DNA of 18,812 bases from Paramoeba atlantica (lineage: Eukaryota > Protista > Discosea): NCBI GenBank assembly GCA_977017575.1, contig CDRNVI010000116.1, positions 1-18,812 of the forward strand. Reading direction: 5' to 3'. This document shows positions 16,040-18,812 of this stretch, one piece after another. The position numbers were made by a program, and so were the translations under genes. Under the pieces are notes generated by a model. The model had not been told where the DNA came from. It saw nothing but the letters and a program-made list of their open reading frames with translations, and searched no databases. Numbering within the stretch: the stretch's first letter is position 1; each line of letters starts with the position of its first letter.

Positions 16040-16910
16040 TTACTTATTTTTATATTTATTTATTAAAATTATAGCAATTAATATAAATAATAATTCACTA
16101 TTTAAATTATTTATAGGTAATATATAGAATATAATTAAACTAACAGATGAAATAATAAATAAGAACAAATAATTAAAAATATAACCTGTTGGGAAAAAAT
16201 ATTTATAATTAATACTTAAAGAATTTCATAATCTAACTAAACCTAAAGGCCCTATTAATTCTATAATACCTCTATCAATATTTTTAAATACTATATAGGA
16301 TAATTTAATAAAACCTCCTAAAATTATTTTATTATAAATAGTATCCACATACCATTTATAAGAAAAAAAACTTGCAATATTATTATATCTTTTAAAATAT
16401 AAATAATTATTACTTCTTAAAACTTTATATAAATAAGTATAATAATAATTTATTAAAAAAAATAATTATTATACCAGACATACTAAAAAAAAAAGGAATA
16501 TTTTTTATATATCAAGGTAAAAATTCTGATTCTAAAATTAAAATATTTCTAGTTGAAATTATATTTAATCAATTTAATCAAGTATCATTACCTAATCCTA
16601 TAAATAAATCTTTATTAATATAACCAAAAAATATACTATTTAAAGCTAATATAAATAAAGGTAAAGACATAAAAATATTAGATTCATGTATTAATTCAAA
16701 CATTTTTCTATAACCATTAGGTGATGTTATAAAAACATATACTAATAACCTAATACTATATAATGATGTAAACAAAGCTGCTATAACACTTAATCAATAA
16801 ATAAAAGAACTATCTATTATATATGATATATAAGTAATTTCAATTATAACATCTTTAGAATAAAACCCTGTTAAAAAAGGTATACCCATTAATGCTAAAG
16901 AACCTATTAT
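16040..16910 (-). CDS. nad5: NADH dehydrogenase subunit 5, 3' part only (5' part lost at the junction); +1 frameshift in a T8 run at ~16455-16462
   Basis: [49 protein letters not shown] at 16040. Confidence 0.94.
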
Positions 16911-17367
16911 TGCACTAAATGATAACTTATCTACTTTGGTTAATAATACGTGTAACGGTACGTTGCTATGCTGTGCCCATCTAATCATGTGTTGATCGGT
17001 TTTCTTTTAGTGGATGACGACAATCCATGAGTAACACTAATCCTCGCAAACATTGGCGATCAAGCAAATACTGTTGTAGTAATTGTTCCCAATTGGCTTT
17101 AATCGTTTGGCTGACTTTAGCGTAGCCATAACCAGGCAAATCAATCAAACGATTCGTATCATCTAAACAAAAAATATTAATTAATTGAGTGCGGCCTGGC
17201 GTTTTACTAATCCTGGCTAATTGCTTATGTTGGGTAATTGCATTTAATGCACTGGATTTTCCTGCATTTGACCGACCAACAAAGGCTACTTCAGCACCCT
17301 TATCTTCTGGTAACTGTGCTAAGTTGGCAGCACTGTGGGAAAAATAAATATTATGGTAATTGATCAT
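16911..17367 (-). CDS. engB: Bacterial ribosome-biogenesis GTPase EngB/YihA, C-terminus cut at the junction, +1 frameshift at ~17000-17003
   Basis: G1 GRSNAGKS, G2 SKTPGRT, G3 DLPGYG, G4 TKVDKL (after frame correction). Trp is encoded by TGG, consistent with the standard code. Confidence 0.95.
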
Positions 17368-17406
17368 CTATTATCGGCTCAATATATTTGTTATCCTCAT
17401 TGAACA

Positions 17407-17435
17407 TAGACTAACCTATATTTTTCAGTTATAAA
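17407..17435 (+). promoter_or_regulatory. Possible sigma70 promoter for dsbA-uvrD
   Basis: TAGACT-N17-TATAAA in the divergent engB/dsbA spacer. Such motifs are common by chance in AT-rich DNA. Confidence 0.3.
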
Positions 17436-17498
17436 AGCACATTGTGTTAGCCCATGCTAAGATTAACCTTGAATAAAATAACTGCGGAATCAAAAACT

Positions 17499-18274
17499 AT
17501 GTATTTATATACTCAAAGCGTTTTGAATGTAGGCGAGGCAGCAAGTCTTCAAATCAACAAGAGTGTATTGAAATACATGACTGTTGTGAGGAGGCGTAGC
17601 CAACGAAGACCTAAATTTAAAACGCGAAGAGTATACCAGCCACTACGCTATGTGATTAGCATCATTACACTGACAATCATAACTAACGCTTATGCTGCAC
17701 CGACGTTTATCGCTGGCAAAGATTATCGGGCACTATCACCTACTGCGCGTTCTGCTGCTGCTAATCTTGCACCTGATGCCACTGAACAACCCTACTGTTA
17801 TTGAATTCTTTAGTTATGGTTGCCCGGCATGTTATCGTTTAGAACCAGACATGAAAAAATGGGTTGCCGGTAAACCAGCTAATGTACACTTTCAACGGAT
17901 CCCAGTAACATTTCAACCTGGCTGGAACGAATATGCTAAAGCATATTATATTGCCGAATCATTAGGTATCTTAAACAAGATCACGCCTGCCATGTTTAAT
18001 GCTATTCATGTTAAACATGATAATCTCGCTCAAACAACTGCGCTAGCAAAATTGTTCGCTCAATACGGCGTTAGCCAAACTCAATTTAATGCTATTTTTT
18101 CAACAGTCACCAGCATTGACACTAGCCATAGCAAATGGTGATAAACTGATGCAACTATATGGCATTAATGCAGTGCCGACTATTATTGTGAATAACCACT
18201 ATGTAACATCTGCTGTAATGACAGGTGACTCAACTAAATTATTTCAAGTGATTGACTATTTAATTAAGAAATAA
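17499..18274 (+). CDS. dsbA: Periplasmic thiol:disulfide oxidoreductase DsbA, with an in-frame 42-codon element in the signal peptide and two +1 homopolymer frameshifts (~17790-17792, ~18095-18100)
   Basis: VIEFFSYGCPACY active site, RIPVTF, cis-Pro loop GINAVPTIIVN, signal peptidase site AYA-A. The three track ORFs join after removing one base at each site. Confidence 0.92.
17508..17635. mobile_element. 128-bp ERIC-like imperfect palindromic miniature element (MITE-like)
   Basis: Terminal inverted repeats TATACTC/GAGTATA with TA at both ends. Nested pairing: GCG/CGC, TTTTGAAT/ATTTAAAA, TAGG/CCTA, CAACA/TGTTG, TGTAT-tgaa-ATACA. Size and internal blocks (GGCAGCAAG, GAG..TGACT, GTGAG, GCCAACG) resemble ERIC as I recall it; not aligned. 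Confidence 0.82.
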
Positions 18275-18310
18275 ATTAATAAGTAACGCTATAACTTGCA
18301 CTTAAGAGTA

Positions 18311-18812
18311 ATGCAAATGACTGCTAATCTACACCATCCACTCATCGCAACACTAAACGATGCGCAGGCAGATGCAGTACGTGCCCCATTGGGAAAATTG
18401 TTAGTATTAGCCGGTGCAGGCAGTGGTAAAACCCGTGTATTAGTTCATCGTATCGCTTGGTTATTACAACATCACGATGCCTCTCCTTATAGTATTTTAG
18501 CCGTGACATTTACTAACAAAGCAGCCGGTGAAATGCGTGCACGTATTGAAGCATTGCTAGGACGCTCAATTGCCGGGATGTGGGTTGGCACCTTCCATAG
18601 CCTAGCACATCGCCTTTTACGCACACATTGGCGTGATGCTAATCTACCTGAACATTTCCAAATTCTCGACGCAGATGATCAACACCGTTTGATTAAACGT
18701 TTAATCAAAGAATTAGGCATTGACGACACTAAATTTGCACCGCGACAAGTACAATGGTACATCAATGCTAAAAAAGATGAAGGATTGCGTGCTCAACAAT
18801 TACAAGATGACG
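18311..18812 (+). CDS. uvrD: DNA helicase II (UvrD), 5' part
   Basis: LNDAQ, LVLAGAGSGKTRVLVHRIAWL, ILAVTFTNKAAGEM, WVGTFHSLAHRLLR, FQILDADDQ. Open to the window end. Confidence 0.95.
   Translation, partial: MQMTANLHHPLIATLNDAQADAVRAPLGKLLVLAGAGSGKTRVLVHRIAWLLQHHDASPYSILAVTFTNKAAGEMRARIEALLGRSIAGMWVGTFHSLAHRLLRTHWRDANLPEHFQILDADDQHRLIKRLIKELGIDDTKFAPRQVQWYINAKKDEGLRAQQLQDD

Follow-up and report, generated by a model that had tools for sequence, protein, structure and literature searches.

The dsbA gene of a protist-associated gammaproteobacterium carries a true in-frame insertion of an ERIC element at a TA dinucleotide in codon 4, inside the signal peptide. The inserted element belongs to the 128-bp size class of its MITE family and is read here, with good though incomplete confidence, as a tolerated passenger and not as an adaptation. 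The case provides a clean natural example, complete with an orthologous empty site, of a bacterial MITE surviving inside an important gene. The insertion lies near the end of the window, by which is meant the whole 18,812-nt stretch of DNA that was analysed (contig CDRNVI010000116.1 of the Paramoeba atlantica assembly GCA_977017575.1).

The window consists of two parts. From position 1 to approximately 16909 it is AT-rich mitochondrial DNA of the protist (GC ~20%) with the genes atp9, cox3, cox2, atp1, nad2, nad4, nad1, nad11, nad6 and nad5. From 16911 onward it comprises ~1.9 kb of bacterial DNA (GC ~39%) on which dsbA lies between a 5' portion of engB (minus strand) and the beginning of uvrD. 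The bacterial part corresponds to one locus (L016) of OZ220716.1, a public chromosome of 2,447,832 bp (2.45 Mb) from a MAG labelled "Gammaproteobacteria bacterium", at 99.84% identity over 1,902 nt, the only differences being three 1-nt gaps (0 mismatches). None of the contigs in four public runs spans 16909/16911, engB continues in L016 upstream of the point at which the window switches to nad5 (with ~1 nt of microhomology at the junction), and in run X2 the mitochondrial contig goes on into other sequence past the joint. These observations mark the junction as an assembly chimera.

As it stands in the window, dsbA occupies three frames and engB two. The extra bases lie in homopolymers (TTTT at 17000 in engB; CCC at 17790 and TTTTTT at 18095 in dsbA), and all three are missing from L016 and from the contigs of runs X1, X2 and X4. 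Real pseudogenisation of dsbA and engB was considered and rejected on these grounds. Both dsbA frameshifts and the engB frameshift are homopolymer assembly errors, and the extra bases suggest a long-read assembly with leftover indel errors. In L016, engB is an intact gene of 198 aa (TIGR03598 match at 241 bits) and dsbA is one intact ORF of 257 codons (774 nt) beginning at the ATG at 17499, as it also is in runs X1, X2 and X4. A public gene call for this protein (P0236) has 272 aa and starts 15 codons further upstream. Apparent dsbA and engB pseudogenes in such a chimeric, indel-bearing contig are not to be trusted at face value. A further single extra base, at 16455 in the mitochondrial part, is missing from the contigs of other runs.

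The coordinates of the insertion and of the related features are collected in Table 1. The dsbA frame opens with ATG at 17499, TAT and TTA, followed by the codon TAT (codon 4, 17508-17510) in which the element begins; the element ends within the codon TAC (codon 46, 17634-17636). Between them 42 codons and 0 stops are added. When 126 nt are removed and one TA is kept, the gene encodes a 24-residue signal peptide, MYLYQPLRYVISIITLTIITNAYA/APTF. The outer arms of the palindrome (26 nt) are 81% complementary, and the full-length hairpin has a folding energy of -44.4 kcal/mol (z = -6.1), which 0 of 200 shuffles equalled. The left terminus, TATACTC, is the same as that of the Salmonella ERIC, SeRU-1 (PMC2759123, Table 1a). 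An earlier sequence-only reading had described a 128-bp imperfect palindrome, TATACTC...GAGTATA, at codon 4 of dsbA, with its terminal TAs in Tyr codons, 42 stop-free codons and a 24-aa signal peptide after removal of 126 nt. The coordinates 17508-17635 are borne out and the sequence agrees in each of these respects.

That reading had also supposed an empty TA site in DsbA orthologues, and such a site exists. The closest DsbA among 5.8 billion proteins (P0001, ~60% identity) lacks the insert. It starts MRFYQQFSY, encoded by ATG CGT TTT TAT CAA, with a single TA that falls in the Tyr codon TAT at the homologous position, and its signal region reads MRFYQQFSYFIALLL...AYG/APSF. On the contig that encodes it (L004), uvrD likewise follows dsbA, and its product is 78% identical to the UvrD of the window. 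The 42 inserted residues are found in 0 of eight aligned DsbA homologues. All runs containing the organism have the insertion, and no empty allele was seen in the contigs of those runs.

Table 1. Features of the window, and ERIC copies in OZ220716.1 and in other genomes. Positions without a locus name are those of the window.
Feature	Position	Strand	Remark
nad5-engB junction	16909..16911	.	assembly chimera, from mid-gene nad5 to bacterial engB
engB/yihA, 5' part	16911..17367	-	truncated by the chimera; spurious additional T at 17000
dsbA CDS	17499..18274	+	real gene of 257 codons; spurious bases in the window at 17790 (C run) and 18095 (T run)
Signal-peptide coding region	17499..17696	+	predicted; now 66 codons, ancestrally 24
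ERIC-family MITE copy, 128-bp size class including both terminal TAs	17508..17635	+	hairpin, contig breaks, depth, homology
Left terminal repeat, TATACTC	17508..17514	+	first TA is positions 1-2 of Tyr codon 4
In-frame internal ATG, codon 27	17577..17579	+	near the hairpin apex; candidate alternative start
Right terminal repeat, GAGTATA	17629..17635	+	last TA is positions 1-2 of Tyr codon 46
uvrD, 5' part	18318..18812	+	runs off the window end
cysC (adenylylsulfate kinase) copy	L015:425-551		six codons before the inferred ancestral stop
Composite copies, 152-177 bp	L005:1717-1893, L021:820-971 (to 985 in the comparison with hemL), L024:4154-4326, L030:5521-5672, L031:6138-6310
Interrupted copy	L011:4182-4488		~177 bp after copy position 113, with inverted repeat CCTAAAATC...GATTTTAGG
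Deletion derivative, 66 bp	L008:103-168		both arms kept
Second ERIC subfamily copy	L016:4649-4777		arms much nearer the E. coli consensus than those of the main subfamily
metE-metR ERIC loci	L001, L009, L012, L014, L018-L020, L022, L023, L025-L027, L029, L033-L036, L040-L043		decayed ends

Published ERICs of E. coli and Salmonella are 127 nt long, start with TATACCC or TATACTC and end with GGGTATA or GAGTATA (PMC2759123, Table 1a); terminal TAs and duplication of a TA target are also published features of the family. The element in dsbA is collinear with enterobacterial ERIC copies from E. coli, Citrobacter and other genera at ~70-73% identity over ~110 nt. When the dsbA copy was used as the BLAST query against 28 Gb, the ERIC in the metE-metR spacer of E. 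coli (two genomes) was matched with 70% identity over 110 nt (E = 0.04). An alignment of 22 sequences, including 14 symbiont and seven enterobacterial copies, is almost gapless and has a mean column identity of 82%. The hairpin is shared across this alignment, with compensatory changes in 19 of its 39 pairs, and the change in the apical stem from CCCC/GGGG in the enterics to CAAC/GTTG in the symbiont is a compensated one. The metE-metR spacer ERIC is an old orthologue common to E. coli, Citrobacter, Enterobacter, Phytobacter, Kluyvera, Scandinavium and Pseudescherichia. It has a canonical ERIC core, and its arms (TTTTGAATTTAGG / TAAATTTAAAA) match the main subfamily of the symbiont and not the E. 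coli consensus.

The size and hairpin, the full-length similarity including the core, the TA ends with their duplication and the multicopy, mainly intergenic distribution are all those of ERIC. The departure is in host range, described as Enterobacteriaceae and Vibrionaceae, which is a non-structural criterion. Judged by these comparisons, the element is a real ERIC-family member that agrees on all structural features examined. An Rfam scan of 16800-18812 with E up to 1 returned no family, a distant BLAST search of a plasmid collection gave just 27-30-nt chance matches, and a promoter/terminator scan found nothing within the element and upstream sites at chance level.

In two runs, the contig depth summed over 17476-17643 exceeds that of the flanks ~40-100-fold (~465,000 versus 12,000 in X2, and 43,000-75,000 versus 700-1,100 in X4), which suggests several tens of copies, a copy number from depth being approximate. 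Many contigs turn into unrelated sequence exactly at 17508 and 17635. A scan of the left-arm pattern over one genome per species (185,579 species) matched 19 loci of OZ220716.1 and one orthologous locus in 20 Enterobacteriaceae genomes. The 19 loci selected in this way amount to 152 kb of the 2.45-Mb chromosome and hold at least 21 full copies, namely 14 of 126-128 bp, five composite, one interrupted and one of a second subfamily, in addition to fragments. Nearly all copies have the ends TATACTC...GAGTATA, and the same hairpin is adopted by every one of the 20 family copies folded. The dsbA copy is 87-94% identical to the other full copies of the chromosome, the nearest being the one at 94%, and has about 4-5 private substitutions. 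Four of the 14 standard copies belong to the 128-bp class, the sole class able to keep a reading frame (net 126 nt); the modal lengths of 126-127 bp would shift it.

Several variants accompany the standard copies. In the right half of their hairpins the composite copies contain an additional, nested palindrome that is richer in G+C (about GCTTGCCC.GGACTTGATCC.GGG), and they look like either a MITE within a MITE or a distinct subfamily. The ~177-bp interruption at L011 may be another small mobile element inside an ERIC copy. The second-subfamily copy ends 1 nt past the stop codon of a 492-aa ORF. Compared by eye with the printed E. coli consensus in reverse complement, it agrees at 21 of its first 24 nt, and its presence means that two ERIC lineages coexist in OZ220716.1. 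Contigs of three runs also show the 66-bp short form, as a joint in which CAAAGCA links 17536 to 17612. No IS-sized parent with matching termini was found in the 152 kb. An extra terminus match in the same sequence lies inside an nrdB-like gene and was dismissed as chance.

Nineteen of the 21 copies are intergenic, one (in dsbA) is read through and one clips the 3' end of cysC, and many adjoin a stop codon at a distance of 0-12 nt or immediately precede a start. Because this census covers 152 kb picked by the left-arm pattern, more coding copies may exist. The cysC copy supplies that gene with its last three codons and TGA (..NNILKVF), and in-silico removal restores an end of ..NNILHVRELS before the stop. 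Other candidates were discarded as coding insertions: at L039 the frame is open into the gene but Hfq starts (MSKGQ) downstream of the element, and the genes that follow the copies before rlmD, hemL and a DUF47-family gene also start downstream of the elements. At L021 the probable GTG start of hemL lies 6 nt beyond the end of the composite copy, whose terminal GAAGAG is a possible ribosome-binding site.

The frame used in dsbA is open in most copies and the other frames contain 1-7 stops, although one open frame of six in 128 nt is about what chance would give. When the 43-residue translation was searched with phmmer against 1.84 billion representative proteins, it turned up in no other real protein; the four matches were the symbiont DsbA, two tiny ORFs called on intergenic copies and, by chance, one unrelated repetitive protein. 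An RPE-like family (RPEs being Rickettsia palindromic elements) with a preference for in-frame invasion of protein-coding genes could account for the frame that is open in most copies and for the in-frame position of the dsbA copy. It is nonetheless highly improbable, given the 19 intergenic copies against a single one read through, modal lengths that would disrupt a frame, an open frame at chance level and phmmer matches limited to DsbA, two small intergenic ORFs and a chance match.

The sequence-only reading had placed the repeat in the ERIC family and had supposed it to be multicopy. Both proposals hold, the first because the element is homologous and collinear with enterobacterial ERIC and shares its termini, length, hairpin and TA flanks, and the second through the full copies of OZ220716.1 and the contigs that break at both element ends. 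Its further suggestions of RPE-like behaviour and of an undescribed family of protein-invading repeats are not supported by the results. One read-through and one 3'-end clip among 21 copies, with the frame kept by only four standard copies of 14, do not resemble RPE behaviour; the family is the known ERIC family, the peptide occurs in no other real protein among the 1.84 billion, and intragenic ERICs were already reported by Delihas (2007).

The dsbA product is predicted from its sequence and structural model to be a DsbA thiol:disulfide oxidoreductase with a CXXC motif and a thioredoxin fold with helical insertion. The catalytic CPAC and all invariant DsbA columns are kept, the DsbA homologues carry Pfam PF01323 and PF13462, and the best match among solved DsbA structures is the PDB entry 4jrr, presumably a Legionella protein, with E = 2e-42. 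At the N-terminus, the predicted features of a Sec type I signal peptide are all present, with a basic n-region, a hydrophobic core and small residues at -3/-1. Hydropathy averages 2.5 over the h-region VISIITLTIIT (11-residue window), and AYA/AP, the predicted cleavage motif, aligns with the cleavage regions of the eight aligned DsbA homologues. The insert contains 11 K/R and one acidic residue and lies wholly N-terminal to both. In the AlphaFold model, residues 1-44 have pLDDT <50, a helix spans residues 47-63 and the DsbA domain (from residue ~70) exceeds 90. The resulting n-region, of 50 residues with a charge of +10, is unusual, and targeting might be impaired.

The preferred reading, that of a tolerated passenger, runs as follows. 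A non-autonomous ERIC-family MITE of the 128-bp class inserted at the TA in codon 4 (Tyr) of dsbA, and with a net gain of 126 nt and an element open in the frame hit, the reading frame goes on. The 42 added residues would then lengthen the cytoplasmic n-region of a cleavable Sec signal peptide. With the hydrophobic core and AYA/AP untouched, signal peptidase would presumably release the same mature DsbA as in the ancestral state. Removal of the insert together with the signal peptide, leaving mature DsbA unchanged, would be the reason why this one coding insertion has survived under purifying selection. An insertion in a part that is cut off after export supports the view that rare coding copies mark tolerant positions and not a special protein-invading ability.

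The hairpin begins 9 nt downstream of the ATG at 17499 (+10 of the ORF), where it could affect initiation. The computed cost of opening the region from -18 to +15 around this ATG is 9.8 kcal/mol, versus 4.7 for the empty-site allele. The cost is thus approximately doubled by the hairpin, which on this folding model likely lowers dsbA initiation and expression. A fairly unlikely alternative is that the start has been displaced, with DsbA translated from the ATG at 17577 as a 40-residue signal peptide beginning MTVVRRRSQRR, and with the left half of the element serving as a structured 5' leader. This ATG is present in frame in the element, translation from it would place a classic basic n-region ahead of the h-region, AGGAG stands 13 nt upstream of the ATG in most family copies, and other copies are found directly upstream of the true starts of hfq, rlmD, hemL and the DUF47 gene. 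In the dsbA copy, however, AGGAG has become AAGAG by mutation, and a spacing of 13 nt is long. This ATG also lies in the apical stem, where opening its ribosome-binding window has a computed cost of 15.7 kcal/mol, above that of every other candidate start. GGAAT stands ~11-13 nt before the ATG at 17499, in a region conserved with the orthologue in L004. By these computed and comparative indications, the ATG at 17499 is probably still the start.

A second alternative is that poor initiation or failed export has crippled dsbA, making it a young, still-intact pseudogene in a reduced symbiont genome. The strength of the hairpin at the start of the ORF (-44 kcal/mol from +10), the genome size of just 2.45 Mb and the existence of one relative that has engB-uvrD without dsbA between them speak for such decay. 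It is judged decidedly unlikely all the same, since the 774-nt ORF is free of stops and frameshifts in the MAG and in three runs despite the ~4-5 private substitutions of the element, and since the CPAC motif and every invariant column of DsbA persist. The substitutions themselves bear on the question. The dsbA copy alone breaks two G-C pairs (columns 33-96 and 53-76) that are kept in 21 of the 21 other aligned copies, and its hairpin is the second weakest of the 14 standard-length copies, which would be expected if translation matters. The weakened hairpin is compatible with relaxed or opposing selection in a translated region, the numbers being small.

A joint reading goes further than the tolerated passenger in two respects, proposing that the ERIC hairpin and the basic 42-residue extension have been co-opted to regulate DsbA and, separately, that ERIC has a much greater age or horizontal mobility than its described range indicates. 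This reading is considered unlikely. If the co-option were true, the element might attenuate translation or present an RNase target at the ORF start, serve as an extended signal peptide that changes targeting, or do both. The wider view of ERIC would rest on two ERIC subfamilies in a deep-branching non-enteric lineage.

Comparison with known systems helps to place the tolerated insertion. Like the ERIC/IRU (RU-1) elements of Enterobacteriaceae and Vibrionaceae, the element is an imperfect palindrome of ~127 bp that can form a long RNA/DNA hairpin, and it has termini of the form TATAC(C/T)C...G(G/A)GTATA, TA ends and a duplicated TA target. The collinear homology includes the GGCGGCAAG and GCAGCCAAC blocks and the central AGGAG...GTGAC core, and tens of dispersed copies are located near gene ends. 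In contrast to ERIC/IRU, the host is a protist-associated gammaproteobacterium whose DsbA and UvrD are far from their enterobacterial counterparts, the apical pairs are CAAC/GTTG in place of CCCC/GGGG, and composites of 152-177 bp with a nested second palindrome occur. The open frame is on the strand opposite to the 42-aa ORF that Delihas (2007) reported in E. coli ERIC.

The ERIC sequences within annotated genes described in that study are mostly C-terminal tails or small ORFs, and the MITE-derived signal peptide described there comes from RU-2/YPAL and not from ERIC (Delihas, 2007). As in those cases, an enterobacterial-type MITE gives rise to translated residues, and the C-terminal fusions resemble the cysC case. 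Unlike the earlier ERIC cases, dsbA is a conserved housekeeping gene whose reading frame passes through a full ERIC close to the N-terminus, and an orthologous empty site is at hand. Intragenic ERICs have been on record since 2007 (Delihas, 2007); the novelty lies in the host lineage and in the N-terminal position.

The dsbA insertion is like RPEs in that a palindromic repeat resides in frame inside a protein-coding gene without destroying it. RPEs are often coding, including roughly half of the R. conorii copies in some families (PMC10969869), whereas one of 21 copies is read through here, a comparison made by coding share. A 2024 review gives the range of ERIC as Enterobacteriaceae and Vibrionaceae and contrasts ordinary MITEs with the frequently coding RPEs. 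The QMITE1 and QMITE2 elements of Coxiella burnetii also show occasional in-frame 3' fusions, e.g. in enhC (PMC5896051). They are similarly MITEs of an intracellular gammaproteobacterium that encode basic peptides, but they insert mostly into hypothetical ORFs or the 3' ends of genes and not into a signal peptide (PMC5896051), and by name they form an unrelated family.

No enterobacterial protein is among the best 115 DsbA or the best 120 UvrD matches. The named UvrD matches, at ~60% identity, are from unclassified Gammaproteobacteria MAGs and an Endozoicomonas-like genome, and an ESM Atlas search with UvrD gives taxonomy to phylum only. The Legionellales-like affinity suggested in the sequence-only reading is here a putative one. 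ERIC-type elements are extended by this case to a protist-associated gammaproteobacterium outside the described families, which bears on the age and horizontal spread of ERIC. Two relatives (L044 and L045) have no dsbA between engB and uvrD and hence offer no further empty sites, and no ERIC-like copies were found in 36 kb of relatives. At the contig end upstream of dsbA in the empty-site relative (L004:1-150) there are approximately six tandem 24-nt units (GACGGACGTTGTAGGTTGCAAGAT-like).
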